DNA of 64,000 nucleotides from Ylistrum balloti (Eukaryota), in the NCBI RefSeq assembly GCF_031769215.1, contig NW_026781981.1, forward strand, positions 806,001 to 870,000. Reading direction: 5' to 3'. The notes beneath the pieces were generated by a model. That model was given only the letters and a program-made list of their open reading frames with translations, was not told where the DNA came from and ran no database searches. The position numbers and the translations under genes were made by a program. Below are positions 6,680 to 54,946 of this stretch, piece by piece. The stretch's first letter is position 1; each line of letters opens with the position of its first letter.

Positions 6680-6762
6680 CTGCTTTATTGATAAGATATA
6701 TACAAAGAGAACACCAGGGGTCTTTGGTAACAGCCAGAATATCTCGCGCACAGAGTTAGTAT
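6680..6762 (-). other. GY1 non-coding terminal (3'UTR) exon with conserved motif and AATAAA
   Basis: On the minus strand: acceptor ttttctcctattccag|ATAC at 6763/6762, then TGTGCGCGAG...TGGCTGTTACCAAAGACCCCTG (6752-6715), then AATAAA at 6689-6684. It matches the terminal exons of GY2-4. Confidence 0.75.
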
Positions 6763-7514
6763 CTGGAATAGGAGAAAACATACAACGTATTTTAGTTTTT
6801 TGATGTAGACAAAATTTACAATTGTAATTTGATAAATAAAATCTGATTATTTTACAAATAAAATTAATGATTATTGTCCTATTTACTCAGGTAAGATAAA
6901 TAACATATTAAAAGAATAAACGAGAAAAAGTTGATCCAACAGGTTTGATTTAATGTCCGCTGCATATGGCTTAACATTTTCCGAGAAATTGTCACACTCA
7001 TCAACTTCATTAATGCACATGTCTAATAAATTTCATCACATAATCGTTATCTAGTGAGTTGGTTCATGTCATAATTTTGTATTAAATATGACACTAGTGT
7101 GATATACCCTTGGGCGCCTTTTAGTGTCTGGACCAGCGAGAAATCGATTGTGATGTCAAATATGGCAATGACATTAATTCAGTTTTCGTCTATTGAAAAC
7201 TGTACAACAAAATGGCTGCCTTACGTTAGATTTTGCCCTCCAAATATTAACTTCAAATAAGCAAAACTGTTATGTGATAAGATTTATTGTCAGTTTTATG
7301 ACCCGTCTCGAAGTTTATTTCCATTCAAGCTTTTGTTATCAATTTATCAAAATTAATCCATTTTCATGAAACTCAAAATGTATCGAAGTTAAGGTGAGAT
7401 GGCCAACCATCAGGCATTCAAAATAAATCTTACAATAACGATTAAAATGTAAAAAAAATAATATATGACCGTTGATAACTCACTTTAGAATTCATCTTGA
7501 TCCGATGTCAATAT

Positions 7515-7561
7515 TTAACCAGTGTTGTTGACCAGCAAGGGAAGAAGCACCAGTGCTGCCA
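7515..7561 (-). CDS. GY1 coding exon 3: (L)AALVLLPLLVNNTG*
   Basis: Acceptor tatatttcag|TG at 7562/7561 is phase-compatible with the exon-2 donor. TAA at 7517-7515. A 3'UTR donor AAA|gtgagt follows 31 nt after the stop (7484/7483). Confidence 0.8.
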
Positions 7562-8214
7562 CTGAAATATACGTCTCAGATGCATTAAGTCTCAAACACG
7601 AGATAATGAACAGTTCGTAGTTAGATTATACAGCAATACTTGGGCAGGTGACAGGTACGGAAAATGCTAGGAACAAGTAGGTTGTTATAAAATAGGTATT
7701 GATAGATAGTACAAGATATTTAGAAAGGTAATTAAAGACATTATTACGGAGATTAAGTAGTACTTTGATGAGCGCCTGTCAATACAAATTTAGAATTATT
7801 CATAAGTGAAACAGAAATCAACTCTTTCGTATAGATGGCGCTACAGTAGCCAATGTGTTATAACCTTTGGCCTACGTAACCTTAGGCGATGACCCGAAAT
7901 GTATGGTTCGACGCTCCCTACGCTGTTTTTGTCTATCAGAATGATGGGCAACGGACCTGTCTGTGCTGACATGATTGTATTATTTGTGCACGATTCTTGC
8001 CCTTATCGCTAAGGACAGCATGCGTTCAGTGAGGTAGCCACCAATTACTACAATAAGACCCTGGCTGTTCATTTGGCGATAAATACAGCAAAGAAATAAA
8101 CACACATCAAACTGTTTGATGTCTAGGGACTTGTCACACAGCCTAAGAGTCTAAACTGTTGAAACCTAAAAGGTAACTGATCACATTTTTGTTAATACTT
8201 TTTGCAATACTTAC

Positions 8215-8584
8215 ATAGAAGGTACAGATAGTCATCATTTCCAGCATCAGCAGCCGCAGCAATAGCAGCACCAGGGGGTATTCTAGGTACTGGATAGGGT
8301 AAATACACTACCCTGTTTGGTATACCATGTCCTTTTCCTCCGTAACCCTTTCCATATCCATGACCATATCCTCCGTATCCTTTTCCATATCCGCCATATC
8401 CTCCATATCCGCCTTGTCCTCCATATCCACCGAATCCGCCATAACCATACATGTCATATCCTCCTCCATTTCCCCCTATAATGAAGCCATCGTGACCATA
8501 TCCGCCCCCATACTCGCCACCAAGACAGCAACCCACAGATATGAGAATTGTCAGGATCAGCAGAGCTAGGGTGGCAAATTTCAT
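8215..8584 (-). CDS. GY1 main coding exon: secreted Gly/Tyr-rich protein (138 aa spliced), shell-matrix-like composition
   Basis: MKFATLALLILTILISVGCCLG signal peptide, then GGYGGYG/GKGYG repeats, YLPYPVP and AAAA-DAGNDD. Acceptor gtcaacag|AG at 8592/8591; phase-1 donor CTAT|gtaagt at 8215/8214. Confidence 0.9.
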
Positions 8585-8812
8585 GATTCCTCTGTTGACA
8601 AATTAAAAGAACAAAAGAAAGTTTACATGATATAAAACCAATATAATTGCCTACAAGTAAAATATAATGACGAACATATTTACAATATTGAATTATTTAC
8701 ATTACATTCATTTAGAAAAGAAACCAATTCTAACAAATTATATAGTATAGCATCGTCTTTCATATTAAAGTGTATTAAGAAATGGAAATTCTGTATACTT
8801 ATTTTCACTTAC

Positions 8813-8867
8813 CTCTTTACACCGAAGGGTCCTGAATGTGGGGTATAGATGGTGGTGAGTATATATA
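8813..8867 (-). promoter_or_regulatory. GY1 TATA box and short non-coding exon 1
   Basis: TATATATA at 8867-8860 (minus strand) and donor AAAGAG|gtaagt at 8813/8812, the same layout as GY2-4. Confidence 0.65.
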
Positions 8868-10744
8868 CTACAAGAAATCAAGTGAACTCAAGTTGTCCTT
8901 CCCAAGTTTCCTCGATTAGAAAAAATTATGTAACCTGGTTGGTCAGTGAGTGTTTGTTTACCAGAAATACTCCCGTCTGAACTTTTAGCCTATGTGTTGA
9001 CGCAGACTTTATTTTAATACAATTGTGAGTCGTTAAAGCATAGAAATACGTATTCTGATTATAATATAGATATAATTTAGTATTGCAATTTAAGAAATTG
9101 ATTGAATTATGAAGTTATTGTTTCCCATCTGTGAGATTGATTCCAACCAATTTTGATTTTCCTCATGGATCCTCCAAGTTTCAACAACTGAGTCCCTCAG
9201 TATCATGGTCGAAATTATAATTTCCTGTCTTTATGTGAATTTTAAAAATGTCATTTATAATACCTGCGGAATTTAATGTTCAAAATGTTTCCGTGTGGAT
9301 GACCCGACACTCTACTACGTTAAAACGAAATAAGAACTAGAAGGAATACGTTTTGTTTATATCGTTTTGATAACTTACGGTATTTTTCGTTTGGATACTT
9401 ATTATTTAACTATCGTACTACCGAATTTTACAAAGTTTTAGAAAGTTGTATATTAAGAAAGAATCTCTATTTATGGCAAAATTGGTACACATCTACTGAT
9501 GCTTTAAAAATATGCTGAATGCTGGTACAGTATTGTTGGTATAAAACACATGCATTTGCACTCTTAAGCTTATAGAATAATAATCAATTGAAATATTTGT
9601 CGTAACAATAATTTGAATACAAGAGTCACGTCCATTGAAAATGAAATGAAAGTCAAACTGAACTATGCCCGTGTCCATGTATATAAAGAAAACAAACATA
9701 AAAATTGAGCGTTCTTTTCCTGCTTTTCCATGGGAAAAAAATGACGATGCTTAATTCTTAAAATTTAATTTATTGTTCAAGTTTAAATGCGTTGATACAT
9801 AATTCCTATTTTAAATATATAAATACAGCTATGAACTATCAATGTTTTTCTTTTAAGAGTACACATTGTGAAACATGTTTCAGTTAAACATGACGATAAC
9901 GATACGTACTATTAGCATAGTAATGTATACATGATATCATCTATTGTTGGCAGAGCATTTACACATCATTACTACACCATTACAAACACATTTTGACCGT
10001 TATTGAAGTACAAGTATGATGGATACATAAAGTAATTACCGACAATGATTTATCAAATATTATGATTTAACTAATAGATTCATCGGTATCATATCTTATA
10101 ATTTCCTATTACTAGCGCACTATTTACAACCTGTTTAGTACACGGTAGTGTGAACAACTGTATGTCATTAAATCTAGTGAAAAAGGGCAGAATACGGTGA
10201 ATGTACTAACAGCGCATAAGGAATGATATGTTACCATCACTGATAATTTCCACATTAACAGGAAAAGACACACAACTGAATATAACATTTTAATGCTAGT
10301 TTATAATTATATATAATAGAGTCAAACAATTAATTAAACCGAAATAAGTGACCAATAATGACATCAAAATGTTTATTCATGTTTTTAAGGTTTAGGTTTG
10401 TGCAGAACATATAACTGATATCGGCTAACCAATCTGAATGCGACATTATGATAAATGTCCAAAATATATCCTCCAGTTAACGAAATATACATGCATGATT
10501 TTCAGTCGATATGTACCGAGAGAGGTTTCCACCTCCAGGGAATGTCAATAACTAGTAGTCATGGCTGTCAATCATATCCTGTATGGGGAGATGATGTAAG
10601 ATAGTCTGTTAACGCGCAGTGTTTTACAATATCTGAATGCATGCACTGCACCAAAAATAAACATTATACTTAAGTAATTATTTTATGTAGTCGCAACTAA
10701 AGTTATAATATATAAAAAAAATGCTTCCAATTTTTTTCATGATG

Positions 10745-13700
10745 ATTCTGATGACGTTTTAGGGAAACCAGATAACAGACGCAGAAAACAACTAATTATT
10801 ATGATGACGTTTTCTTGGAGACCAGATAACAGACCCAGAAAACAACTAATTATTATGTTGACATTTCTTGGAGACCAGATAACAGACGCAGAAAACAACT
10901 AATTATTATGATAACGTTTTCTTGGAGACCAGATAACAGACCCAGAAAACAACTAATTATTATGTTGACATTTCTTGGAGACCAGATAACAGACAAAAAC
11001 AACTAATTATTATGTTGACATTTTTTGGAGACCAGATAACAGACAAAAACAACTAATTATTATGTTGACGTTTTTTGGAGACCAGATAACAGACAAAAAC
11101 AACTAATTATTATGATGACGTTTTCTTGGAGACCAGATAACAGACAAAAACAACTAATTATTATGATGACGTTTTCTTGGAGACCAGATAACAGACAAAA
11201 ACAACTAATTATTATGTTGACATTTTTTGGAGACCAGATAACAGACCCAGAAAACAACTAATTATTATGTTGACATTTCTTGGAGACCAGATAACAGACA
11301 AAAACAACTAATTATTATGATAACGTTTTCTTGGAGACCAGATAACAGACCCAGAAAACAACTAATTATTATGTTGACATTTTTTGGAGACCAGATAACA
11401 GACAAAAACAACTAATTATTATGTTGACATTTTTTGGAGACCAGATAACAGACAAAAACAACTAATTATTATGTTGACATTTTTTGGAGACCAGATAACA
11501 GACAAAAACAACTAATTATTATGTTGACAGACAGATAACAGACAAAAACAACTAATTATTATGTTGACATTTTCTTGGAGACCAGATAACAGACAAAAAC
11601 AACTAATTATTATGTTGACATTTTCTTGGAGACCAGATAACAGACAAAAAACAACTAATTATTATGTTGACACAGATAACAGACAAAAACAACTAATTAT
11701 TATGATGACATTTTTTGGAGACGAGATAACAGACAAAAACAACTAATTATTATGTTGACATTTTTTGGAGACCAGATAACAGACAAAAACAACTAATTAT
11801 TATGATGACGTTTTCTTGGAGACAGATAACAGACAAAAACAACAGACAAAAACAACTAATTATTATGTTGACATTTTTTGGAGACCAGATAACAGACAAA
11901 AACAACTAATTATTATGTTGACGTTTTCTTGGAGACCAGATAACAGACAAAAACAACTAATTATTATGATGACATTTTTTGGAGACCAGATAACAGACAA
12001 AAACAACTAATTATTATGTTGACATTTTTTGGAGACCAGATAACAGACAAAAAACAACTAATTATTATGTTGACATTTTTTGGAGACCAGATAACAGACA
12101 AAAACAACTAATTATTATGTTGACATTTTTTGGAGACCAGATAACAGACAAAAACAACTAATTATTATGTTGACATTTTTTGGAGACCAGATAACAGACA
12201 AAAACAACTAATTATTATGTTGAGATAACAGACAAAAACAACTAATTATTATGTTGACATTTTTTGGAGACCAGATAACAGACCCAGAAAACAACTAATT
12301 ATTATGTTGACATTTTTTGGAGACCAGATAACAGACAAAAAACAACTAATTATTATGTTGACATTTTTTGGAGACCAGACAACAGACAAAAACAACTAAT
12401 TATTATGATGACGTTTTCTTGGAGACCAGATAACAGACAAAAACAACTAATTATTATGTTGACATTTTCTTGGAGACCAGATAACAGACAAAAACAACTA
12501 ATTATTATGTTGACATTTTTTGGAGACCAGATAACAGACAAAAACAACTAATTATTATGTTGACGTTTTTTGGAGACCAGATAACAGACAAAAACAACTA
12601 ATTATTATGATGACGTTTTCTTGGAGACCAGATAACAGACAAAAACAACTAATTATTATGTTGACATTTTTTGGAGACCAGATAACAGACAAAAACAACT
12701 AATTATTATGATGACGTTTTCTTGGAGACCAGATAACAGACAAAAACAACTAATTATTATGTTGACATTTTTTGGAGACCAGATAACAGACAAAAACAAC
12801 TAATTATTATGATGTCGTTTTCTTGGAGACCAGATAACAGACAAAAACAACAAAAACAACTAATTATTATAACAGATAACAGACAAAAACAACTAATTAT
12901 TATGTTGACATTTTTTGATAACAGACAAAAACAACTAATTATTATGTTGACATTTTTTGGAGACCAGATAACAGACAAAAACAACTAATTATTATGATGA
13001 CGACAAAAACAACTAATTATTTTTTTGGAGACCAGATAACAGACAAAAACAACTAATTATTATGATGACATTTTTTAGATAACAGACAAAAACAACTAAT
13101 TATTATGATGACATTTTCTTGGAGACCAGATAACAGACAAAAAACAACTAATTATTATGTTGACGTTTTTTGGAGACCAGATAACAGACAAAAACAACTA
13201 ATTATTATGATGACATTTTTTCAGATAACAGACAAAAACAACTTATTATTGGAGACCAGATAACAGACAAAAACAACTAATTATTATGTTGACATTTTTT
13301 GGAGACCAGATAACAGACGCAGAAAACAACTAATTATTATGATGACGTTTTCTTGGAGACCAGATAACAGACAAAAACCAGATAACAGACAAAAACAACT
13401 AATTATTATGTTGACGTTTTATTGGAGACCAGATAACAGACAAAAACAACTAATTATTATGTTGACGTTTTCTTGGAGACCAGATAACAGACAAAAACAA
13501 CTAATTATTATGACAACTAATTATTATGTTGACGTTTTCAGACCAGATAAAGACAAAAACAACTAATTATTATGATGACATTTCTTGGAGACCAGATAAC
13601 AGACAAAAAACAACTAATTATTATGATGACGTTTTCTTGGAGACCAGATAACAGACAAAAACAACTAATTATTATGATGACGTTTTTTGGAGACCAGATA

Positions 13701-15365
13701 ACAGACAAAAACAACTAATTATTATGATGACGTTTTCTTGGAGACCAGATAACAGACAAAAACAACTAATTATTATGATGACGTTTTCTTGGAGACCAGA
13801 TAACAGACAAAAACAACTAATTATTATGATGACGTTTTCTTGGAGACCAGATAACAGACAAAAACAACTAATTATTATGATGACGTTTTCTTGGAGACCA
13901 GATAACAGACAAAAACAACTAATTATTATGATGACGTTTTCTTGGAGACCAGATAACAGACAAAAACAACTAATTATTATGATGACGTTTTCTTGGAGAC
14001 CAGACAACAGACAAAAACAACTAATTGTTATGTTGACATTTTCTTGGAGACCAGATAACAGACAAAAACAACTAATTATTATGATGACGTTTTCTTGGAG
14101 ACCAGATAACAGACAAAAACAACTAATTATTATGTTGACATTTTTTGGAGACCAGATAACAGACAAAAACAACTAATTATTATGTTGACATTTTTTGGAG
14201 ACCAGATAACAGACGCAGAAAACAACTAATTATTATGTTGACATTTTTTGGAGACCAGATAACAGACAAAAACAACTAATTATTATGATGACGTTTTCTT
14301 GGAGACCAGATAACAGACAAAAACAACTAATTGTTATGTTGACATTTTCTTGGAGACCAGATAACAGACAAAAACAACTAATTATTATGATGACATTTTT
14401 GGAGACCAGATAACAGACAAAAACAACTAATTATTATGTTGACATTTTTTGGAGACCAGATAACAGACAAAAAACAACTAATTATTATGTTGACATTTTT
14501 TGGAGACCAGATAACAGACAAAAACAACTAATTATTATGTTGACATTTTTTGGAGACCAGATAACAGACAAAAACAACTAATTATTATGTTGACATTTTT
14601 TGGAGACCAGATAACAGACAAAAACAACTAATTATTATGTTGACATTTTTTGGAGACCAGATAACAGACAAAAACAACTAATTATTATGATGACGTTTTC
14701 TTGGAGACCAGATAACAGACAAAAAACAACTAATTATTATGTTGACATTTTTTGGAGACCAGATAACAGACAAAAACAACTAATTATTATGTTGACATTT
14801 TTTGGAGACCAGATAACAGACAAAAACAACTAATTATTATGTTGACATTTTCTTGGAGACCAGATAACAGACAAAAACAACTAATTATTATGATGACGTT
14901 TTCTTGGAGACCAGATAACAGACAAAAAACAACTAATTATTATGTTGACATTTTTTGGAGACCAGATAACAGACAAAAACAACTAATTATTATGATGACG
15001 TTTTCTTGGAGACCAGATAACAGACAAAAACAACTAATTATTATGATGACGTTTTCTTGGATAACAGACAAAAACAACTAATTATTATGATGACGTTTTT
15101 TGGAGACCAGATAACAGACAAAAACAACTAATTATTATGATGACGTTTTCTTGGAGACCAGATAACAGACAAAAACAACTAATTATTATGTTGACGTTTT
15201 TTGGAGACCAGATAACAGACAAAAACAACTAATTATTATGATGACATTTCTTGGAGACCAGATAACAGACAAAAAACAACTAATTATTATGATGACGTTT
15301 TTTGGAGACCAGATAACAGACAAAAACAACTAATTATTATGTTGACGTTTTTTGGAGACCAGATA
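10745..15365. repeat. 51-bp satellite array, ~4.6 kb (ggagaccagataacagacaaaaacaactaattattatg(a/t)tgac(g/a)tttt(c/t)tt)
   Basis: Continuous tandem units. The 17-aa periodicity of the shadow ORFs (MMTFSWRPDNRQKQLII) confirms a 51-bp unit. Many units have small indels. Confidence 0.95.
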
Positions 15366-15822
15366 ACAGACCCAGAAAACAAATGATTATTATGATGACG
15401 TTTAAAGGAGACCGGATGACAGAAAACAAGTGATCATTATGATGACGTTTAAAGGAGACCGGATAACAGATAGAAAACAAATGATTATTATGATGACGTT
15501 TAAAGGAGACCGGATGACAGATAGAAAACAAATGATTATTATGATGACGTTTAAAGGAGACCGGATAACAGATAGAAAACAAGTGATCATTATGATGACG
15601 TTTAAAGGAGACCGGATGACAGATAGAAAACAAATGATTATTATGATGACGTTTAAAGGAGACCGGATAACAGATAGAAAACAAGTGATCATTATGATGA
15701 CGTTTAAAGGAGACCGGATAACAGATAGAAAACAAGTGATCATTATGATGACGTTTAAAGGAGACCGGATAACAGATAGAAAACAAGTGATCATTATAAT
15801 GACATGTTTTAATAGACCAGAT
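15366..15822. repeat. Variant 51-bp satellite subfamily, about 9 units (atgatgacgtttaaaggagaccggat(a/g)acagatagaaaacaa(a/g)tgat(t/c)att)
   Basis: Units are homologous to the main array but carry fixed differences (tttaaagg, ccgg, gataga). The switch at ~15366 is abrupt. Confidence 0.9.
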
Positions 15823-16644
15823 GTATGGAAATCAAAGCAATAAGAAGCACATCTCAAATTACATAATCAAATAACAATTTATCAAAAATATATTGAAAAT
15901 ATACACAAACAGATGATTTAAGTATTGAAATTAATAATTCTTTACGGACGTACCCCAAATGACATTCAATGTCTAATTTGGAGCATAGTTTCATTTTTAC
16001 AACACAAGTGTAATACTATGATAATTTCTCACATGCCACTGAGCAACTGTAAAGTAACAACGATAAATGAAACGTAAATCTCAATTTGAAATTTACTTTA
16101 CTCTCTTTAACATTTCCCAATCACAGCAGTCTTAATAAAGGCCAAAACACTACCTATATGTAGAATTTGTTGTAGAAACTTATCACGGCACATTTATGTT
16201 TTTCCATTTTATATATATTAATACAAAATCATTATTTAACAGTCAAAGTGTTCAAATCAGGAAAATGTCAACAAACATCACAAAAGTTGAAAAAAAAAAT
16301 GTAGATTTGTAAGATAATATAATTTTTTAAAATCTTTTTGTGAAGCAGCATAACATTTTCCATCATTATAGTAACTTATTAAAATTGGACAGAACAGTTG
16401 CAGAATGAAATGTCGTAAAATGCCTTTTTGGTATACTATTAGATAACGGTTCCTTCGAGCCAAAGTGAAAATTTTCTCTGAGATACAAGGTGACATTTGT
16501 GTATATACACCACTGTCCGTTCTGTTATACTATCAGTTATACAGTGCTGCTTACTTTGATCGATGGACCATTACTGGTTGTAATACCATGTTGCAATTAC
16601 AAACATAGGTTTCCGGGTACATTCATAACTCATCGTAGATCAGG

Positions 16645-16705
16645 TATATAAATACGAGCTTTACTTTCGTCAAATCATCCTCACTTCACCGGCTCATCAG
16701 AACAG
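16645..16705 (+). promoter_or_regulatory. GY2 TATA box and non-coding exon 1
   Basis: TATATAAATA at 16645-16654 and donor AACAG|gtaagt at 16705/16706. The same layout occurs at 21122 and 25703. Confidence 0.75.
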
Positions 16706-17128
16706 GTAAGTTGGATTGGAGATCGAAGATACAAGCATTAATCTAGTAATTTGATCATGCTATAAAATGTATGATTTTCTAAAAAAAAAAAGAAATGAAA
16801 TCCTTATGTATGTCTGGTGACTTATATTTATCGATATTGCAAACATTTCATTGAGTAAATGGTTAATTTTCAATCTTAACCGCAAGGACAATTTTTTCCT
16901 TACTTGATGTTATGTATATCATTAATGAAACTCGAAAGATCCACAAATGTTTCGTTATGTTTTCCCTTCTTTTTTGCTAAATTTTCCTTTAAACACCGAA
17001 TTTCTGACTGCGACTGTTATCCTCGATTTGAATTTTTTTTTCTAGTTTCCTTCTTTCAACATTGGACTTTTTCTAGAATCTGAATGTGTATTCTGAAACA
17101 TGCTATAACTTCATACCTTAGGATCAAC

Positions 17129-17453
17129 ATGATGCATCTTAAGTTTGCCCTTTCAACCATAACTCTTGCCCTTGTCCTTGGCTGTTGTCTCGGAGATGGC
17201 TATGGCAGCTATGGAGGGGGATATGACACGTACGGCGGAGCGATGTACGGAGGATATGGTGGTTACGGAAAAGGTTATGGAGGGGGATATAGCGGATATG
17301 GCGGATATGGCAAAGGATACGGAGGGAAAGGATACGGCCATCAAGAAAGGGCTGTGTATATTCCTTACCCTGTACCCGCTGGACCTGCACCAGGATTTGT
17401 AGCAGGAGCCGCCGCAGCAGAGTACAACGACGATAACAGTAATATACTGTTGT
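17129..17453 (+). CDS. GY2 main coding exon: secreted Gly/Tyr-rich protein (126 aa spliced)
   Basis: Acceptor ccttag|GATCAAC then ATG at 17129. Encodes MMHLKFALSTITLALVLGCCLG + GY repeats + YIPYPVPAGPAP + AGAAAAEYNDD. Phase-1 donor TTGT|gtgagt at 17453/17454. Confidence 0.9.
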
Positions 17454-17668
17454 GTGAGTACAAAACTGACATGTTTAAGATATAACAATTTAGCAAAACG
17501 TATTTCCTACATTGATTCAATGTTTACATAATTATTGCAGATAAGTGTGCTTTCATCATATCATATTGAATTGCTCTTAAAACTACAATGGAACAAGGTT
17601 ATAGTGATCTTTGTCAAGCACGCCTGTTCTTTCAATTGACATAGTTGAACAAATTTTGTTATTTTCAG

Positions 17669-17724
17669 TCGGAGGTGCCCTCTTGCTGCTGCTGCTGATC
17701 AATAATAACAACAACAGTGGATAG
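17669..17724 (+). CDS. GY2 coding exon 3: (F)GGALLLLLLINNNNNSG*
   Basis: Acceptor tttgttattttcag|TC, in frame, TAG at 17722-17724. 3'UTR donor GGAAG|gtagga at 17756/17757. Confidence 0.85.
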
Positions 17725-17870
17725 ACCATTTACCATGTAACGGACTATAACGGAAGGTAGGATGTTAAACTTATCATTTAAATCGAGGGTTTAAGTAAGC
17801 CTATTACCATTAGCGTCTATTTTATGTCATTACATGAACAAGCAACAATAAATTTAATTTTCTGTTTCAG

Positions 17871-17964
17871 ATTGACTTTCTTTGTGCGCGAGTCTCCTTG
17901 GCTGTTACCAAAGACCCCTGTGTGTTTGCGGTCATCATTTTACTTGTTAACATTCCTCAATAAA
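17871..17964 (+). other. GY2 non-coding terminal exon
   Basis: Acceptor ttttctgtttcag|ATTG, conserved motif at 17883-17920, AATAAA at 17959-17964. Confidence 0.75.
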
Positions 17965-20934: not shown

Positions 20935-21121
20935 TATTTGATAAAGTGAATTTATTTGAAAATGAAATGCAAGATTGATTTTTTATGCTCTGACCTATCT
21001 GTTACACTATCAGTTACACAATGCTGCTTACTTTGACCGATGCACCATTACTTGTTGTAATATCATGATATAATTACAAACGTAGGTTTCCGGGTGCATT
21101 CATAATTCAGCTTGGATTAGG

Positions 21122-21871: not shown

Positions 21872-22120
21872 GTGAGTACTAATACAGCATAACATGTCTT
21901 AGATATAATGTTTCAGGGGAACGGATTTCCTCCATTGAATCAATGTTTACATAATCACTACAACAAAGTGTGCTTCCATCATGTTCTTGAATATAACACA
22001 CATATACATATCACATTGTATTGCCCTCGAAACAACAACAAAAGAAAACGTCATAGTGATCTATGTCAACCACGCCTGTTCTTCAATTGACATAGTTGCG
22101 ACATATTTTGTTATTTTCAG

Positions 22121-22176
22121 TCGGAGGTGCCCTCTTGTTGTTGCTGCTGATCAATAATAACAACAACAGTGGATAG
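22121..22176 (+). CDS. GY3 coding exon 3: (F)GGALLLLLLINNNNNSG*
   Basis: Acceptor ttattttcag|TC at 22120/22121; TAG at 22174-22176; 3'UTR donor at 22208/22209. Confidence 0.85.
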
Positions 22177-22322: not shown

Positions 22323-22417
22323 ATTGATTTTCTTTGTGCGCGAGACTACTTGGCTGTTACCAAAGACCCCTGTGTGTTTGCGGTCATCATTTTACTTATA
22401 TATCATTCCTGAATAAA
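22323..22417 (+). other. GY3 non-coding terminal exon
   Basis: Acceptor tttctgtttcag|ATTG, motif at 22335-22372, AATAAA at 22412-22417. Confidence 0.75.
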
Positions 22418-26128: not shown

Positions 26129-26462
26129 ATGTATTATCTTAAGTTTGCCCTTTCGACCATAACTCTTGCCCTTGTCCTTGGCTGTTGTCTTGGAAATGGC
26201 TATGGTGGCTATGGAGGCTATGGAGGAGGATATGACATGTACGGCGGAGCGATGTACGGAGGATATGGTGGTTACGGAAAAGGCTATGGAGGAGGATATG
26301 GCGGATATGGCGGACATGGCAAAGGATACGGAGGGAAAGGACACGGTCATCAAGAAAGAGCTCTGTATATTCCTTACCCTGTACCCGCTGGACCTGCACC
26401 AGGATTTGTAGCAGGAGCCGCCGCAGCAGAGTACAACGACGATAACAGTTATCTTTTGTTGT
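26129..26462 (+). CDS. GY4 main coding exon: secreted Gly/Tyr-rich protein (128 aa spliced)
   Basis: ATG at 26129 (MYYLKFALSTITLALVLGCCLG), with one extra YGG unit relative to GY3. Phase-1 donor TTGT|gtgagt at 26462/26463. Confidence 0.9.
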
Positions 26463-26468
26463 GTGAGT

Positions 26469-26471
<3 letters not shown>

Positions 26472-26556
<85 letters not shown>
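26472..26556. repeat. (CT)n microsatellite, ~42 units, in GY4 intron 2
   Basis: Pure CT run, absent from the homologous introns of GY2 and GY3. Confidence 0.97.
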
Positions 26557-26558
<2 letters not shown>

Positions 26559-26666
26559 ATATTGTGTTGCTCTCAAAGCAACAATTAAACAAGCTTGTAT
26601 TGCGATCTATGTCAACCACGGCTATTCTTACAATTAACAAAGTTGTACATCTTTTGTTATTTTCAG

Positions 26667-26865: not shown

Positions 26866-26959
26866 ATTTATTTTCTTTGTGCGCGAGACTCCTTGGCTGT
26901 TACCAAAAACCCCTGTTTGTTTGCTGTCAGCATTTTACTTGTTAACATTCCTAAATAAA
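26866..26959 (+). other. GY4 non-coding terminal exon
   Basis: Acceptor ttctctgttacag|ATTT, motif TGTGCGCGAG..TGGCTGTTACCAAAAACCCCTG at 26878-26915, AATAAA at 26954-26959. Confidence 0.7.
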
Positions 26960-33718: not shown

Positions 33719-33755
<37 letters not shown>

Positions 33756-35189: not shown

Positions 35190-35258
35190 TGATTTTATTG
35201 TATTATTTGTAACAGCCTTTCTGTTCGCTTAATTCAAAGTCGCAAATACAAACCAGTC
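35190..35258 (-). other. GY7 probable non-coding terminal exon
   Basis: Minus-strand acceptor tttacattaaaacag|GACT at 35259/35258, GGCTGTTACAAA at 35217-35206 (the same GGCTGTTAC core as GY1-4), and AATAAA at 35199-35194. Confidence 0.55.
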
Positions 35259-42200: not shown

Positions 42201-42666
42201 ACCTGTCATTTGGTGAACAAGGAAATATCTTCTGGTTATAATTGGCAATGTTCTTTCTCAGAGAAAAAGGATAAGTATGTTTTACTTTCTGTGACAAGAA
42301 AATTTCAAAATTAAGCAGCCAACTGTGTGAAATACATGTATGTGAACATCAATAAAGTATGATGACATTGATGTTAATGCACGTGTTCGTGTATGTACAA
42401 GGAAAACTAAAATTTATGATTTTATTTGTATTATTGATTTGACTTAATGATTATCTCCCCTTTTCTTTCAGGTTTGTAACAGTCCACTTCCATGACCATG
42501 CAATCATGATTACCCATGAAAATAGATTAGGTGTGTTGTGGACTGTGGTAGAGAGTGATTAATGACTGACGCTTTTCCATTATGAGAGGTGTGTATGCAG
42601 TGAGTTAACTATCTTAAGTTAGGAGGTCGTTGATCTCGTTGATTTCGTGGAGATTCTTTATTCGTG

Positions 42667-42668
<2 letters not shown>

Positions 42669-42726
<58 letters not shown>
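42669..42726. repeat. (TC)n microsatellite
   Basis: Pure TC run. Confidence 0.97.
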
Positions 42727-42729
<3 letters not shown>

Positions 42730-46400: not shown

Positions 46401-47519
46401 TAGAAAAAAAGTCCAAATATTGACAAACAGTATTTTTGCAATACCACACCTTAAAAGTATAAGTTATAAATATAGATTAAATCTTTTTTTGTGAAATGCA
46501 ATACTCACAGTTTTATTTTGCTAATTCTAAACCGTTTTCTTGATAAATGCAGACAATTTTTCCTCTTTTTTATTTTTGAAACTTTTGAAACAATATAAAA
46601 TCACATTTTTAATATTCTATTCTTAAATATATGAGAAATCATATCTCTTAGCATATATACATACTTTTATACATGTTACTACAGCAAGGCAGATTCATGA
46701 TTTCAAGAGTTGAAAAACATAGTGCTTTGTTCTGCTTTAGATAGAGAAAGAAAAAGACAGAAGTAAGAAAAGACAGAGAAAGGACAGAAAAAGAAGGTGC
46801 ATAAAGAAAAATGAAGATTCCTTTTTCATATCATATTATTATTAATAAATTTGATAAAAATATTTCATATATACATTAAATACGAAAAAAATGAAATTTA
46901 ATATATCATGTCAACAGGAATGTAAACATCAGGGTCTAGGCAAGGCTAGCTATACAACTTTTGTGTTTTAAGTATGTGGTTTTGATGTGCTCGTTAGCTT
47001 TATTCTATGCAAAGCGGTTTCATGGTTTTTAATACTGATCCCCGTGGGAGGACGTGATTTTGATGTTTCGTTCGAACCTTCTGGAATTTACTCAGTCGCC
47101 TCCTAGGTTTCAACATTTAGGCCTTTAGGACAACTGATGAATCCTTAAAGGTCAAACCTTCTGTATGATGCAGTTTACTTCATTGTTTGGCTCTGTTGTC
47201 TACTGTATCCTATTTGTATCCTGTATGTTTTTTGTACAATCTTAATTGATCAATGATACCCTGACGGAATATATGTAGTAGGATATCTTTGTCCTACTGA
47301 ATCACGCATTGTTCTTCATTTGCTTGTTCGCATGGTAAATTTAAGTATCGTTCTTTCATTTTGTGCATATTTGTCAACGCGTTTTTTTTTTAAGAATATT
47401 GATTTTGATAACACAACCGTATTATCTTGATTCATTTATGCCTTATGTTGAAATATCTGTGCATATACTTACATACAGCGATGAGAACAAAAGACTAAAT
47501 ATCAACATTTCAACGAAGA

Positions 47520-47595
47520 ATTATTTAATGACAAAAATACACAGGGGTTTTTGGTATTAACTGTAAGTGACGTTGTTGACCTCTTGCGCGAAAAC
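47520..47595 (-). other. GY8 non-coding terminal exon
   Basis: Acceptor tttttattcatttgtag|GTTT at 47596/47595, then GCGCAAGAGG and TACCAAAAACCCCTGTGT (47556-47539), then ATTAAA at 47529-47524. Confidence 0.7.
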
Positions 47596-47868
47596 CTACA
47601 AATGAATAAAAAAAATCATTTTAAACAAGGAGAGACTTTTTTGTATGGTTCATAATTACTGTAACCACTATTATGATAACTATACACGAAGTTAATCACG
47701 GAGTCAACGTTATGGATCTTCTGAAAATATCATAAGCATATTCAGTCATAAAGATCGGGTTCTGAATATCTTTAGAATACATTCATAGTAATTCAACAGT
47801 TAACAAAAGCATTTGACGTAATAAGACATAAATAACTTACCTATATACAAATCTGTTTGTTGTTTTAT

Positions 47869-47918
47869 CTAACCAGTGTTATTGTTGTTGGATAAGAGAG
47901 CCAGTAACAACACGGCTC
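47869..47918 (-). CDS. GY8 coding exon 3: (G)AVLLLALLSNNNNTG*
   Basis: Acceptor aatgtttcag|GA at 47919/47918; TAG at 47871-47869; 3'UTR donor ATAG|gtaagt 28 nt after the stop (47841/47840). Confidence 0.8.
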
Positions 47919-48208
47919 CTGAAACATTGATATCATCAAATATTATAGTACAAACGGAGAATAGAAAAAAAATATGTGAAAACGTAATGATCATATTATC
48001 TACACAGGCGTATAGGTCAGCGGACAGGCGTATAGGTCAGCTGACAGGCGAGGTCAAGGAAAAGCTAGTCTTGTAATATATCACAGTCTTAGCCAGGTTT
48101 GTAACATTTGTTTTAATGATTAGAAATTAAGAGCGACTCGTTCGACTTAAGAGAGGGAAATCATAAGTATATGTGTGTGATTGATACGGGATTGGAAGTA
48201 GTGCCTAC

Positions 48209-48537
48209 CTGCCAAAAGGAAAAAAATGTTGTTGTCGTTGCCGCCGAATGCTCCGCCTCCTCCATACAGTCCTCCGAGTGCTGCCAAAGGAAGATCTCCT
48301 GGTTCTGGGGATGCAACAGGATACAGTATGGTTGGAAAACCATATCCTCCTTGTCCTTGTCCATATCCGCTATATCCGCCATACCCCCCTCCTTTTCCGT
48401 ATCCTCCGTATCCACCATAGTAAGGTGCTACCATACCTCCTTTTCCGTAACCGCTGTACCTACTCATACAATAATGTCGGTGATCAAGAGTATTCGTACA
48501 TACTTTTGTCTAACAATATTAAACCAGTTGTTATGAC
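48209..48537 (-). pseudogene. GY8 main exon: Gly/Tyr-rich body intact, signal-peptide region decayed (pseudogene or leaderless variant starting at ATG 48467)
   Basis: Acceptor ccctatgtcag|GTCA at 48538/48537 is homologous to GY9 cag|GTCA. The first ~70 nt have stops in all frames. The frame is open from 48467 (MSRYSGYGKGG...GNDNNIFFLLA) to the phase-1 donor GCAG|gtaggc at 48209/48208. Confidence 0.7.
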
Positions 48538-50213
48538 CTGACATAGGGAATGGACGATAGTATATTATACTGCGCTGCAATGAACCGGGTTCAAAGGAAA
48601 ATGATATATTTAAAACATACTGCTACTGATGTATAATCAGACCGTTGTACTTTTGCAAAACAGCACCAGATACAGCACTTATATATAAAGTGCATCCTCG
48701 ATACTCCAGGGGTTACAATTATTTTCGCGCTCTGCACACCTGGAAAATGTCATGGCAAAATTGAAGGCACAAGCAAAGTTATTTAATTGGTTTCAGTAGC
48801 AAAATAGTGGTCAAACATAGGCTAATACGTTTCTTTTGAAGATTACAATGGCGCGACATCCAACTTCAAAGCTATTACAATATACTGTTATGCGACCTCG
48901 AGTTTCCTTTGATGTACATCAAAGGACAAAACTAATTTTTTCGTCTTGTCAACAAGGTGTCACACACGGATCCTTCAACTTTGCCAGGACAATATTCCAG
49001 CGGTAGAAAGAGCGAAAATGACCACTGTAACCCCTGTAGTAGCAAGGATACATAAAATGATATACTTATCAATACTAATTTCAGGGGGCATATTAGTTTT
49101 ATCGAAGTTGAATTTGAATTCAAAATCTGTCCATGTTTTCTTTGCTGATTTTGAAAAAAGAAAACAAAACACGAGATAAAGTTAAAGACGTTTCCAATCG
49201 TCGGCGATGTACTAATGCAACTGTGTCAGTACATAATTTGAAAATTGATTAATTAGAGGGTCAGGTTATGAATTTAATCTAAGCTAAAGACTAGAAGACA
49301 TGCTGGTTTGACACCTAGTATGTTTTGAATAATGATATTGCTACACCCGTCGACCTTAACAGTATTTAATTAGCGTATACCTAACAGGCTTTGGACTCGG
49401 AAGACGGTCATCATTGAAACGGTCAGATATGTAAGTTGAGAAGATGACAAGAAAAAGACATTTAAAGACAAAAAATATATTAACAATATTTTTTTGTTTG
49501 CAAGATGTTCTTAAAGATCAATTTACGTACATATTCTGGACGGGGTAGTATGACCCTCCGTATCCGTTACCCATCACCGCCACGGAGAGGCAAGCCAGCG
49601 AGGCAAGCACCGCACAAGCGAACCTCATTTTGAAAACTGCAATTAAAACAAACAAAATACTATTTGTCATAGTGATTAGTATTTTGCCGCCGATGAGTGA
49701 ATTTACACCAGTATAACATTATAAAGTTTATGTCATTTTTCTATTCTTTAATTTCAATGATTATCATAAAACATTTATGTTAACATTTATATCATAACTT
49801 TTTAAATATCCCGCGGTATAAAAAAAAAAAATAAAAAGGAAGTGAACACAATCAACTGTATCCCTTATTCTAGGAAACAAACATATATGAAAATTAAATT
49901 GATATATCGATGTAAAAAATGTTTTTATAGTTATTATGAAAGCAGCAAATTATAGCAAATTAAAACCATTTCCTTTTGCCTCTAAATACATTTTGCAGAT
50001 TTTTCTGGACTTATTTAAGACTTAAAACCTGGTTATAATATTTAATATGACTGAAATAAAACACTTTTGTAATAACTTTCATTCACATGCTATAAACAAA
50101 GAGGTGAAACATTAATATATATCAATAACCAGTAAGTTTTGATATCTAGACTACTTCGATACACAGATAATGTGAACGAAAAATAATTCAATGGTTGGTT
50201 AAAAGAACTGTAC

Positions 50214-50375
50214 CTGTGATCCTTTGGTGGAAGCGGGTCTGTAAAGGATGCTCTACTCCAAGTCAGAACCGCGGTTTTATATGCCTGGCCCCGAGGATGA
50301 GAAAATGTAGGTCGACCAGTTTCCTGTTATTTCCATATGGACTGATTCCGGCCTCCCTTAATCCATCATCTTTCT
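50214..50375 (-). promoter_or_regulatory. GY8 probable promoter and non-coding exon 1
   Basis: On the minus strand: ATTGG/CCAAT just upstream, AGAAAGATGAT at 50375-50365, TATAAAA at 50281-50275, and donor CACAG|gtacag at 50214/50213. Confidence 0.55.
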
Positions 50376-50724
50376 GACCAATCATTCCAACATGACAAGA
50401 TCGTTTATCGCATCGTGAGTGCGAATGCCAAAAATAAAGTTAAATATTATCATAGGTACTATCACAATTAACACAACACAGTTATAACCAGTTACAACAA
50501 ATCTTTATCATGTAGAACAGTATTCAATGTTATAATCATGTTAACCGTTACTGTATTAAAAAATTCGAACATGTTAACATAATCATAATCCAAATCCAAA
50601 ACAAAAGAAAAAAAATATATGGGGCATTATGGGAAAAAAAAGCAAGGATAATATCAGGTGTTAACATCAAATAATGAGATGGTAATAAGAGTATACGTTC
50701 GGTACCTTATAATGACAAAGCACG

Positions 50725-51110
50725 ACATTTAATATGTTTTGTTGATATTAACAGAACACATGATAATTGACAAAGTAACTGATATCAAATATGTTTTGAC
50801 GTAATAATTTAATATGTTTTGTTGATATTAACAGAACACATGATAATTGACATTAAATATGTTGTTGATATTAACAGAACACGTGGTAACTGATATCAAA
50901 TATGTTTTGTAACAGAACACGTAATAATTGACATGGATATGTTTTGTTGATATTAACAGAGCACATGATAATTGACATTAGATATGTTGATGATATTAAC
51001 AGAACACGTGGTAACTGATATCAAATATGTTTTGTAACAGAACACGTAATAATTGACATGAATATGTTTTGTTGATATTAACAGAACACGTGAAAATTGA
51101 TATTTAAGAA
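50725..51110. repeat. ~44-bp degenerate minisatellite (aatatgttttgttgatattaacagaacacatgataattgacatt)
   Basis: Tandem units are directly visible. Confidence 0.9.
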
Positions 51111-52696
51111 GTTGTGTTGACATTGAGAAATCTTGTGTGTAATGACATTAAATTCATTTTGCTGATCATAAGAGTACAAAACGTGCTCAATGGCATAAAA
51201 TGTAGTGTTGATAATTATTGTTCAGTAATTATTACAATAAACATTTACTATTATTTTGCTAATGAAAATCAATGTGATAATTGGCATTAGATATGTTCTT
51301 TTTATAATGACAGCGTGATAAATGTCATTGTTCTGATAATAATGATAATTTACATGGTAGTTGATTGTTATCAGTCGATTGATACGATAAATTCAAAACG
51401 CATCTTTCTGTCTTGTAGCGTTGATTGTAAAATGTTTTCAGTTCGATTTAAAAGTTTTGTGTTGTATTCCTGAGCGTTTGTTTTACCGTTACAATAATCA
51501 GATATGCAATATCGTATGTGGTGACAATAACAGTTTGAACATTGAAAAAAATAGACGAAAATGAGGAAATATCCTAATAAACTAATGGAGACGGACTTAA
51601 TGAAATAGATTATACAAAATTTATACTTTGATTATGTTTTATTTCCCTGTTGTATTTACTGACTGCTTTATCTGTACATGTATCTTTTTACATGATCGTA
51701 TTAACATGGTGATTTCAGAGGACCATTATTAACAAAGTGAATAGATAACAACACTACATTAAAACGGTATTGGGATTGTACAAAAGATACACAAGTGAAT
51801 AGCACATTTTTATATTTTAGAGTGAGATACAGTAGAGCCAAACAATGAATTAAACAGCATCATACAGTTGTTTCGTTCTTCTAGGACTCGTCAGTGATGA
51901 TAAGGGCATAAATTGTAAAGTCTAGGAGGCGACTAAGGAAAATCCAAAGTGATCAAAAGAAAAGTCAAAATCTCGACAGAGATGTGCATTAGCCCGATAA
52001 TTAAATAAATTTTGTACTTTTCATTCAGATATTCAGATATCAGATAATTTTAGAAAAATTGTCAAGTACGTGTGTATTTTCTGAACCGTGCTACTTTAGG
52101 ATAAACACGAAAACACAGTAAACATATATCTTTTAACATATGTATGTGTGACTGACATGCACCATGATGCGATTCGTGACCGCTTATTTTGCCTTTAGCA
52201 CCATTCCTTATGGCTGAAGATGATAAGCAAAACACATTTTTTTTTTCGTTTCATTATTAAATGACGTATTGCATTAAAGTGTGTGTTCCTGAAGCAACGA
52301 ATCATTTTTTTTAATAAAGACATCCCAGATCTTGGAGTTCTAAACATGAAGATACACAGGAGTTTTCATCATTTAGAAAGTTTAAAGTACTTAGTGTAAG
52401 AGAGAAGACCGTCTCTTTCATTTGATTAAGAAAATATAAATTTTAATAAATATGAAAAAAAAAAATTAAAATAATGAATCTTCAAACAGTACGATATTTG
52501 GATACGATAGAATACATTTTTTCCGTGGATGTTAAACGCTAAATAATTAAATATCAAATCTAAATCATGTAGTCGTAACCATGTCAAGACCACATACTCT
52601 GTCTTCCAGTCTGTCACGTAGCGTGTCCTATAGTATCTCACGTAGGTCAATAGTTTAAGTAACTGAGAGGTCGAATGATCGCGAAGATGACGGATG

Positions 52697-52871
52697 AGAA
52701 AGATGATTTCCTCAGGGGGGATGATGAACCATGAGGAAGTTGATTGAATTTTATCCTGCCATGATTGGTTTAAGGTCAGGGTATAAAAAGTACGACCTCC
52801 ACATCTAGTAAACCAGAATCCCTGAACAGGACGGGATCCTCATCTACATCACAGGGTCCTGTATCATAGGG
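52697..52871 (+). promoter_or_regulatory. GY9 promoter and non-coding exon 1
   Basis: AGAAAGATGAT at 52697-52707, ATTGG at 52764-52768, TATAAAA at 52782-52788, first donor AGGG|gtaagt at 52871/52872. Confidence 0.7.
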
Positions 52872-53542
52872 GTAAGTAAAACTCATCAATATCTCATGGT
52901 TCTGTAGCATAGGGGTAAGTAAGCGGTTAGGTTAAATCTATAACTTATAATCCTGTAGGGTAGGGGTAAGTAAAACTTATTTACATCTCAGGGTCCTGTG
53001 GCGTACGGTTAGGTTAAATCTGTAACTTATAGTCCTGTAGCTTAGGGATAAGTAATATTTATCTACGCCCTAGGTCCGTGTAGACAATTTTGATAAAATT
53101 ATAAAGTATGTTCCTACCCAGTACAGAATTAATGATATGTAGATATAAATAAAATGTCAATTTCTTTTAACGTTTTTTGCAGCAACGTAAGTTCCATGTG
53201 TAACCTTCGGTGTTGGGTTATACAGCGGGTGTTCTGTAAAATCTTGGTTTTATCATTGATGGAAACATGTTAATAATGTATCATTAGGTGGGGTTAGTAA
53301 TATATAACAATCATGATATCCGTTTATGCTTTTGAAAATATGTATAGTGGGAAGTTTCAGAATAATGTAACATCGAATCATGGTCATGATGTAGGGAAGG
53401 CGATACATGGTGATGTTAATAATTACTATAGTATATGTAAAACTTTTACGACGTATGTAAAATGGTGACTATCCTTATTATGATTTTATCGTCTGAATTG
53501 ATAAATTCTTTATTAACAAACCTTATAATGGCAGGTCACGAG

Positions 53543-53921
53543 ATGCGTTTGCTACTCATAGCAATCGCCTCCGGGGCGATCCTCATGGGATTGTTCACGG
53601 CGGTCAATTGTGATGGTGGGTACAGCGGGTACGGGTACGGCGGGTACAATGATTATGACATGTATAGTGGACAAGGGTACGGAGGATATATGTATCCAGG
53701 ATACGGTGGGCAAGGATACGGATATGGTGGAAAAGGATATATAGGATACTCGGGACAGGGATACAGCGGTTACGAAGGAAAGGGAGGAAAAGGTGGTGGC
53801 TATTTTGGCGGTAATGCATTGAGTGTACCTTATGGTCTACGTGTTCCGCCAATCGCCCCACCGCTCGGCTTAGACCAAAGTGGACTCTATGGTGCTAACG
53901 ACTCCTCGCTCTTTACTGTCA
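53543..53921 (+). CDS. GY9 main coding exon: secreted Gly/Tyr-rich protein (145 aa spliced)
   Basis: Acceptor atggcag|GTCACGAG then ATG at 53543. Encodes MRLLLIAIASGAILMGLFTAVNC signal + GYG/GQGY/GGKG repeats + VPPIAPP. Phase-1 donor GTCA|gtaagt at 53921/53922. Confidence 0.9.
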
Positions 53922-54174
53922 GTAAGTATTTGTATCAAAACTAAGGCACGTTATAGGTTAGATGGTTTCAATTAATCTGTATTTATCCAAATGTTTAATT
54001 GTTAGCAAGAGTATGTTAGAAATAATTGAAAGTAACACCGCGCCTGATAATGAAAACCGCATATCAAATAAATAAGCGTTGCTTTTAACTGATGAAGCAC
54101 AAGACCAAATAAACTTGAAATGTAAAATTTCATTGGATTCTGTTACTTATATAACATGTCGTTTCTTCTTGCAG

Positions 54175-54233
54175 TTGCTATCGGATTCCTGTTCTGGTTG
54201 ATTGCTAGTGGTGCCAGGAACAGGACTGGTTAG
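54175..54233 (+). CDS. GY9 coding exon 3: (I)AIGFLFWLIASGARNRTG*
   Basis: Acceptor tttcttcttgcag|TT at 54174/54175; TAG at 54231-54233; 3'UTR donor ATAT|gtaagt 34 nt after the stop (54267/54268). Confidence 0.85.
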
Positions 54234-54858
54234 ATACGGATAACAGCTACAATACCTTTGTATATATGTAAGTATGATCGTTCACAACCAAATATAATTC
54301 AAAATAGCATGCACACAGCATATACATTTTTTTTTTACATAAATATGTGAAGTGGAAACGCAGATAGAACGTCCATTCACTGCCTCTTCCCACCGTGTAT
54401 TAGATGTTGATTGTGTTTCGCTAGGTTTTGTTGATCCGAAAATTTGCCAAAAATTGAAGTAGTTAGATAATAATAAATACATTAATTGTAAAAAAATTCA
54501 AATAAGTTTCCATGCTATATTACCTCTTTATAAAAACCATCAACCAAAAGTAACTATCCGACAATATTCACAGATACAATTTATACATTTCGTCACATTT
54601 TCATCTCCGTAGTGTGCCAATCGTAAATTGTCGATATTTTTTGATGCGTGTTTCTTAGTTTATATTCCAAGTCAATTTAGAAAAGAATGAAACATGAACA
54701 TGCAACATCCAATTATGATAAATTTATCATGATGTAAAAACTTGGTTATGGATTTTATTAGCCGTTACCATTTGAATAAGAGCCACTTTATAAATATAAA
54801 GTCTATTCGATATACGTAAATGAATACAAGCTGTGTAAATGTATTTTTGCTTTTTCAG

Positions 54859-54946
54859 CTTTAAGCGCAAGAGGACCAAGCCGTCATACACGTCACCAAA
54901 ATGCCCCGTTATATATTATTATGATGTTATGTATTTTTGAAATAAA
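54859..54946 (+). other. GY9 non-coding terminal exon
   Basis: Acceptor ttttgctttttcag|CTTT, GCGCAAGAGG at 54865-54874, CACCAAAATGCCCC at 54894-54907, AATAAA at 54941-54946. Confidence 0.7.

Follow-up and report, generated by a model that had tools for sequence, protein, structure and literature searches.

A conserved non-coding terminal exon as a candidate region of post-transcriptional control in scallop glycine/tyrosine-rich genes

Why should short non-coding sequences at the 3′ ends of paralogous genes stay nearly the same when the proteins have drifted apart? The question is raised by a stretch of 64,000 nucleotides (nt) of the scallop Ylistrum balloti (contig NW_026781981.1, positions 806,001 to 870,000 of the forward strand; here ‘the window’), which carries a cluster of glycine/tyrosine (Gly/Tyr)-rich, ‘shematrin-like’ genes, the GY genes. 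Mollusc proteins of this type are textbook cases of fast, repeat-driven sequence change. An initial annotation of the window, made from its letters alone, had pointed to a motif in the 3′ untranslated regions (3′UTRs) of these genes and suggested that it is a cis-element which co-regulates the cluster; the strings that it quoted were all recovered, position included. The motif appears to be the best-kept part of a dedicated non-coding terminal exon, and there is a probability of about 0.6 that this exon is a post-transcriptional control region in the mature mRNA.

Selection on the terminal exon

A common layout is seen in the predicted genes of the whole scallop Gly/Tyr-rich family: the stop codon lies some 28–45 nt before an intron in the 3′UTR, and a last exon of 65–115 nt follows. 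The 3′UTR intron and the last exon were placed from splice consensus, polyadenylation (poly(A)) consensus and the pattern of conservation. In the window, seven genes with such a terminal exon were placed (GY1 on the minus strand, GY2–4 on the plus strand, GY7 and GY8 on the minus strand and GY9 on the plus strand), fewer than the eight terminal exons of the initial annotation or the nine to which its gene numbers run.

The comparison across genera took in Ylistrum balloti, Pecten maximus, Mizuhopecten yessoensis and Argopecten irradians. Each of the last three has a head-to-head pair of orthologues of GY8 and GY9, and across all four the mean pairwise identity of the terminal exon is 0.91 for GY8 (85% of columns invariant) and 0.89 for GY9 (81% invariant). 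The untranslated part of exon 3 is at 0.76 and 0.82, respectively, the coding exons are at 0.63–0.65 and 0.65–0.73, and the introns at 0.33–0.44 and 0.23–0.40. In both genes similarity sets in at the acceptor AG and dies away some 25 nt beyond the poly(A) signal. Between Ylistrum GY1 and its Pecten orthologue (P0001, locus L001), the terminal exon has 82% identity (z-score 7.9), exons 2 and 3 each have 69%, and the three introns are at the level of shuffled sequence (z below 1); the GY1 3′UTR intron can be aligned neither to the introns of Pecten nor to those of GY2.

Since the conservation is confined to the exon, it speaks for a function in the mature transcript and not in the DNA, and since it holds between genera, it cannot be due to gene conversion. 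In these alignments the terminal exon bears the mark of purifying selection and is more faithfully kept than the protein-coding parts. The general reading of the initial annotation, a cis-element of the 3′UTR, stands, and the element is under selection: it is kept in the orthologues of other genera, while flanks and introns are not. As judged from the alignments, the conserved unit is the whole terminal exon, together with the 28–35 nt of exon-3 UTR in GY8 and GY9, and not a 22-nt island.

The motif is also, on the sequences compared, a local version of an old family feature, with GCGCRA, YACCA and a C-rich or CUGUG patch, in that order, as its skeleton. Two further clusters of the same architecture are present in the same genome, one of three genes on contig C259 and one of two genes on contig C627. 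In these and in the Mizuhopecten copies the first letters of the terminal exon are A[TC]ATCGCGCAATAT, and an invariant TCTGTGGAAATCC lies within it; the last exons of both clusters carry an invariant TCTGTG(G/T)... block, and GTTACCA is retained as well in those on C627. Over 42–56 nt, the Mizuhopecten copies of C259 type match at 84–93%. In all subfamilies GCGCRA is found 5–16 nt behind the acceptor. A word search for orthologues of the GY1 and GY2 proteins returned only Pecten P0001 and the window’s own P0002, and a search limited to the C-terminal region returned only the query itself. A profile search added the C259 type (P0003), Mizuhopecten P0004 and a protein of Mya arenaria (P0006); the locus of this Mya relative has no such terminal exon.

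Paralogues, gene conversion and repeats

GY2, GY3 and GY4 are tandem units of about 4.5 kb, mostly 84–99% alike where aligned (84–88% in intron 3). In these young copies introns and flanks are alike too, so a motif common to all three is trivial and uninformative; the informative comparison is that of GY1 with GY2–4, GY8 and GY9. Between GY1 and GY2 the terminal exon is the best-conserved segment, with 72% identity (z 8.1 against shuffles), versus 62% (z 5.2) for coding exon 2 and z 0.7 for exon 3. The promoter and exon 1 are weakly alike (z 2.7), the downstream flank is at z 0.7, the 300 nt upstream are at shuffle level and all introns are at z 1.5 or less, in keeping with the earlier remark that the introns of the two genes lack evident similarity.

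The longest exact word common to the GY1 and GY2 loci is the 22-mer TGGCTGTTACCAAAGACCCCTG (block B), and the next, of 17 nt, falls in the repetitive Gly/Tyr coding part. The 22-mer is perfect in GY1, GY2 and GY3 and has a single mismatch in GY4, just as first described, and was matched in none of 100 shuffles. It is preceded in these four genes by block A, TGTGCGCGAG. GY8 and GY9 share GCGCAAGAGG and have TACCAAAAACCCCTG and CACCAAAATGCCCC, respectively, and GY7 has GGCTGTTACAAA.

Could the identity of GY1 with GY2–4 stem from recent gene conversion, with no selection on the motif? GY2–4 are young tandem copies and, at three positions, Ylistrum GY1 matches Ylistrum GY2 and not Pecten GY1. However, the surroundings of the blocks are at noise between GY1 and GY2. 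In addition, GY1 is like Pecten GY1, in line with orthology and not paralogy, in the initial 11–13 nt of the exon and in the 6-nt spacer separating block A from block B, so that a conversion tract would need two separate patches, of 10 and 22 nt. Blocks that the paralogues share, around a spacer that has diverged between GY1 and GY2 and is orthologue-like, fit selection rather than conversion, which moreover cannot explain the conservation between genera. With introns, the upstream 300 nt and the downstream flank at shuffle level, such a tract was rejected for GY1 versus GY2–4, and conversion as an account of the motif is hardly credible; equal conservation of flanks and introns, the pattern named at the outset as its sign, is not what was found. 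(Two variants are seen in the GY1 terminal exon in DNA sequencing run X1, whose contigs pass through introns of the GY locus; they are at 6753 and 6756, both 5′ of block A, and are too few to inform.)

Nor is the motif a dispersed repeat or a transposon fragment, the other way in which the initial annotation foresaw that it might fail. The 15-mer core TACCAAARACCCCTG has 8 exact copies in the 648-Mb genome, 5 of them within the GY cluster; two of the others are in a satellite on contig C384 and one is on contig C635 with no GY gene adjacent. With one mismatch allowed there are 99 matches, which is no enrichment over the 82 of the reversed control. The core is thus too rare, and its copies off the cluster are at chance level or in satellite, for this reading to be likely, and it was set aside.

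A further block is common to GY1 of Ylistrum (8860–8925, minus strand) and of Pecten (9488–9560 of locus L001), just upstream of the TATA box. It consists of the 16-mer TTTTCTAATCGAGGAA, then GGACAACTT.AGTTCACTTGA, and GY2–4 are without it. Orthologues therefore keep the promoter, and paralogues keep only the 3′ exon.

An exon without coding potential or stable fold

Block A lies 11 nt from the acceptor in GY1 and 13 nt in GY2, which puts the blocks in different phases; joining the GY2 terminal exon to exon 2 (phase 1) gives TGA at once; and in all copies, as in the NCBI models P0001 and P0002, the stop codon is in exon 3. A coding exon, or an alternative C-terminus, is ruled out on these grounds. 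The terminal exons also lack a stable fold, with folding z-scores of −0.55 to +0.86 for single sequences versus shuffles. Folding covariation had been suggested as a check on the motif, and three alignments yielded no compensatory pair and only weak consensus folds. There was no match to Rfam at gathering score in the window, and none for a terminal exon at E values up to 5. With neither stable fold, covariation nor Rfam match, a structured cis-regulatory RNA was rejected.

Candidate binding sites in the exon

Within block B, ACCAAAGA is a perfect 8-mer site for the genome’s own miR-9-5p, and it is present in GY1, GY2, GY3 and Pecten GY1. (A canonical site for this microRNA is a Watson–Crick match to its positions 2–8, ACCAAAG, ideally followed by A, in a 3′UTR.) The mir-9 gene (G000:C315:67263-67340, minus strand) scores 80.5 bits against a cut-off of 58.6 bits, and its 5p arm is identical to canonical miR-9-5p. 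No miR-9-5p seed match is found in GY4, in GY7 or, across the four genera, in GY8 and GY9. When 63 seeds, taken from a snail microRNA table in the literature (PMC7328434), were scanned against 23 terminal exons alone, the miR-9 site was found in the four exons just named as having it, and miR-9 was the only one of the 63 to match the 22-mer. The scan of mollusc seeds that had been proposed as a check on the motif supplied a site for GY1–3, and none of that kind for GY4, GY8 or GY9.

Two other seeds recur in the same scan: GGACCAA, a match of miR-133 type, in all four GY9 orthologues, and GAAAUCC(A), a miR-1986 site, in 7 of 7 exons of the C259 type, inside their invariant block. A mir-133 gene is present in the same genome, as is a miR-1986 gene, with the exact sequence in a hairpin of −43 kcal/mol (z −6.1). 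The GY8 terminal exon, 85% invariant, matches none of the 63 scanned seeds.

The single mir-9 locus (1501–1578 of locus L032) is above the Rfam cut-off on both strands, with 80.5 and 61.6 bits, and its antisense arm CCTTTGGTAACCTAGCTTTATGA would form ten contiguous base pairs with GTTACCAAAG of block B. A shifted or antisense product with the seed UUUGGUA would match UACCAAA in GY1–4 and in all GY8 copies, and would explain the A/G position. However, the snail yields hardly any reads for such products (8 and 16), the seed of the ‘miR-9b’ of pearl oyster is the ordinary one, and the product is no more than an idea. ACATTCC, a 7-mer match to the miR-1 seed, was seen at 17950–17956 and 26945–26951, just before the poly(A) signals of GY2 and GY4, and is lost in GY3.

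In the mantle of pearl oyster a member of the miR-9 family represses a shell-matrix gene (Pif97-like) via its 3′UTR (PMC6907788). The likeness is that of a secreted, matrix-type bivalve gene with a 3′UTR site for the miR-9 family, and the seed of the mimic used there for Pfm-miR-9b-5p, CUUUGGU, is the same. The protein, however, is unrelated to GY, and the oyster site was predicted with miRanda and RNAhybrid and tested with mimics, whereas the GY sites are predictions from sequence. Compared with animal microRNA targets in general, the perfect seed matches of 7–8 nt on the sense strand of a short unstructured 3′UTR are alike, the miR-9, miR-133 and miR-1986 genes are in the same genome, and the sites are kept in orthologues of other genera. 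Unlike such targets, the GY seed does not exceed its flanks in conservation, what is conserved is the exon of 65–115 nt as a whole, and the homologous block persists in GY4, GY8 and GY9 without the miR-9 seed.

Sites for proteins were also considered. UGUA motifs, which are known CFIm sites, lie just upstream of the poly(A) signal in the terminal exons. In four genera the exon-3 UTR of GY8 and GY9 has at its extreme 3′ end UGUANAUA, the Pumilio consensus (UGUAUAUA in DNA), whose sole change is U to C at the free position in GY8 of Mizuhopecten and Argopecten; Ylistrum and Pecten have it in the terminal exon of GY1 as well. In these three places it resembles a Pumilio response element or a CFIm UGUA element. 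It differs in that the GY copy is outside the original motif, overlaps the splice-donor context in GY8 and GY9, and is absent from GY2–4.

ZBP1 (IMP1) recognises CGGAC and [CA]CA[CU], as KH34 studies have it, and neither was found, by reading, in block A or B of any copy. Yet block B shares an exact 10-mer, CUGUUACCAA, with the chicken beta-actin zipcode (sequence as quoted in PMC10484666), in both cases followed by a C-rich run ending CCCC, in the 3′UTR near the stop codon. The shared 10-mer is the zipcode’s spacer, and as the elements contacted by the protein are missing from the GY blocks, a zipcode of this type was set aside as probably coincidental.

What the exon may do

We infer that the terminal exon acts in mature mRNA as an unstructured platform to which trans-acting factors bind. 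Its components would be the family-wide core (GCGCRA near the acceptor, YACCA(AA) and the C-rich or CUGUG patch), the blocks peculiar to subfamilies, and the poly(A) signals. The exon would most likely control how stable the mRNA is or how it is translated, and perhaps where it is localised, and the effect would be to restrict or tune the output of paralogues with diverged promoters. Some blocks may serve as microRNA sites: for miR-9-5p in GY1–3 and Pecten GY1, for miR-133 in GY9 and for miR-1986 in the C259 type. A site for at least one sequence-specific RNA-binding protein would also be expected: the near-invariance of the whole exon beyond the microRNA seeds implies that something else, presumably one or more such proteins, constrains most of it.

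Several observations weigh against this proposal. Both the terminal exon and its splicing are predictions from sequence, as is the tissue in which the genes are expressed. Part of the conservation at the 3′ end is that of an ordinary poly(A) signal, with UGUA, AAUAAA or AUUAAA and the cleavage region. Regarding the microRNA component, the miR-9 seed is not the invariant part of the block: ACCAAAAA stands in its place in GY4 and in the GY8 of all four genera, and in GY9 it is ACCAAAAT, ACCAAAT or ACCAAAAG, which breaks the pairing at seed position 2. The sequence on either side of the seed matches is no less conserved than the seeds themselves, so that a microRNA site’s usual signature is lacking, and preferential conservation of the seed was not borne out, since the GY8 block is invariant in ACCAAAAACC across four genera without a miR-9 seed. 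The excess in the seed scan is modest (19 sites versus 8.3 ± 4.6 for decoy seeds, in sequences that are not independent), and 8.6% of decoy sets attain the same maximum per seed; the sequences being related, it is a lead, not proof.

The main competing explanation is that the sequence serves splicing and 3′-end formation, for which a last exon of only 65–115 nt would need strong exonic enhancers and upstream polyadenylation elements. The conservation does span exactly the distance from the acceptor to the cleavage region, GCGCRA keeps within 5–16 nt behind the acceptor, UGUA motifs, as CFIm sites, stand just before the poly(A) signal, and the position of the intron, 28–45 nt past the stop codon, is itself conserved. 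But enhancers are short and degenerate and do not normally freeze 80–85% of the columns of an exon for so long; the blocks are specific to the family or subfamily and absent from the rest of the genome; and block B lies anywhere between 16 and 39 nt from the poly(A) signal. We consider it rather unlikely that processing accounts for the exon. About as doubtful is the narrower idea, which overlaps with the control region proposed here as a sub-hypothesis, that block B of GY1–3 is specifically a miR-9-5p target and the remaining similarity inherited background. Its merits are the perfect 8-mer for a microRNA encoded in the genome, the retention of the site in the Pecten orthologue, an unstructured context, the uniqueness of the match among the 63 seeds, and the bivalve precedent. 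Set against these, GY4, the four GY8 orthologues and GY9 retain the block and not the seed, and the more distant C627 paralogues retain GTTACCA and not AAAG; moreover, the match was found post hoc, and the probability of finding in a 22-mer an 8-mer for any of some 60 families is estimated at roughly 1–2%.

It is improbable that the element has its function in the DNA, for example as an enhancer at the 3′ end or a factor-binding site, and is in the last exon by accident. The block of the C259 type is a near-palindrome, ATATCGCGCAATAT, and a CGTCA half-site is kept in GY8 and GY9 of all genera, as might suit such a site. In every gene and genus examined, though, the conserved stretch has sharp limits, the acceptor AG and a point shortly beyond the cleavage region, and the element always follows the strand of the gene. 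This reading is among the unlikely ones, together with conversion, repeat and coding origin.

Of the original proposal the 3′UTR cis-element stands; one regulator common to all genes of the cluster is not demonstrated, as its sole concrete candidate, the miR-9-5p seed, fits only GY1–3. A tentative extension, to which we give slight credence, treats the exon as an ‘address label’: the family core (GCGCRA ... YACCA ... C-rich/CUGUG) would be bound by one putative RNA-binding protein, each subfamily would have gained a microRNA seed of its own (miR-9 in GY1–3, miR-133 in GY9 and miR-1986 in the C259 type), and paralogues with diverged promoters would be sorted post-transcriptionally into different cells or times. 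To our knowledge such a system is undescribed for genes of the mollusc shell-matrix type.

Genes and other features of the window

The Gly/Tyr-rich genes of the window have a short 5′ exon behind a TATA box, and then an exon with a signal peptide and GYGG-type repeats. A small exon 3 encodes a hydrophobic tail ending ...N(N)(T/S)G and, after the stop codon, holds about 28–35 nt of UTR; next come a GT..AG intron and a last exon of 65–95 nt ending at AATAAA or ATTAAA. The junction of exons 2 and 3 is that of the NCBI protein models P0001, P0002 and P0009, of which the Ylistrum balloti proteins P0002 and P0009 match GY3 and GY9.

Table 1. Predicted features of the GY loci (positions are those of the window)
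Feature	Position	Strand	Remarks
GY1 terminal non-coding exon	6684–6762	−	from splice acceptor to AATAAA (6684–6689)
GY1 block A, TGTGCGCGAG	6743–6752	−	exact match
GY1 block B, 22-mer TGGCTGTTACCAAAGACCCCTG	6715–6736	−	exact; contains the miR-9-5p 8-mer ACCAAAGA
GY1 UGUAUAUA	6697–6704	−	inside the terminal exon
GY1 3′UTR intron	6763–7483	−	GT..AG, by splice consensus; stop TAA 7515–7517, 31 nt before the junction
GY2 terminal exon	17871–17964	+	block A 17883–17892; block B 17899–17920, exact; AATAAA 17959–17964
GY3 terminal exon	22323–22417	+	block A 22335–22344; block B 22351–22372, exact; protein is NCBI model P0002
GY4 terminal exon	26866–26959	+	block A 26878–26887; block B 26894–26915, one mismatch, G to A, giving ACCAAAAA; miR-9 seed match lost
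GY7 candidate terminal exon	35194–35258	−	degenerate motif GCGAACAG ... GGCTGTTACAAA (the latter 35206–35217); weakest member
GY8 terminal exon	47524–47595	−	GCGCAAGAGG 47580–47589; TACCAAAAACCCCTG 47542–47556; ATTAAA at end
GY8 exon 3	47841–47918	−	hydrophobic tail; stop TAG 47869–47871; 28 nt UTR; UGUAUAUA 47842–47849, just before the junction
GY9 exon 3	54175–54267	+	tail; stop TAG 54231–54233; 34 nt UTR; UGUAUAUA 54259–54266
GY9 terminal exon	54859–54947	+	GCGCAAGAGG 54865–54874; GGACCAA (miR-133-type seed match) 54873–54879; CACCAAAATGCCCC 54894–54907; AATAAA near 54942
C-terminal hydrophobic stretch	7515–7568	−	
C-terminal hydrophobic stretch	17653–17724	+	
C-terminal hydrophobic stretch	22105–22176	+	
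C-terminal hydrophobic stretch	47869–47925	−	
C-terminal hydrophobic stretch	54156–54233	+	

In every family member a hydrophobic stretch of 12–18 residues, with N(N)(T/S)G and the stop codon behind it, forms the C-terminus. Combined with the signal peptide at the N-terminus, the predicted tail resembles a signal for glycosylphosphatidylinositol attachment or a membrane anchor, which is unexpected for a presumed shell-matrix protein. In Ylistrum GY8 (48463–48700, minus strand) no start codon with a signal peptide was found in the Gly/Tyr-repeat exon or in the short exon behind the TATA box, and the Pecten neighbour gene is called with a product of 140 residues. Either a coding exon has been missed, or the 5′ end of the Ylistrum copy is truncated.

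The gap between the divergent GY1 and GY2 is filled by a tandem satellite with a unit of about 50 nt that includes TTGGAGACCAGATAACAGAC, extending over some 5 kb at 10730–15900. Long (CT)n microsatellites are found at 26457–26560 and 42653–42727; the former is in intron 2 of GY4 and gives rise to a spurious long open frame across that intron.

Significance

Regulation of shematrin-like genes has, as far as we know, been studied almost solely at the level of transcription, and literature searches found no description of a conserved 3′UTR exon in such genes. The tandem cluster offers an example in which comparison of orthologues cleanly separates selection from gene conversion. For pull-downs, reporters and microRNA assays the exon also supplies baits and sites for mutation that are short and well defined. 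In genes known for the speed at which their proteins change, the strongest constraint falls on a non-coding exon of about 65–115 nt, which would make post-transcriptional control the conserved feature of the family.

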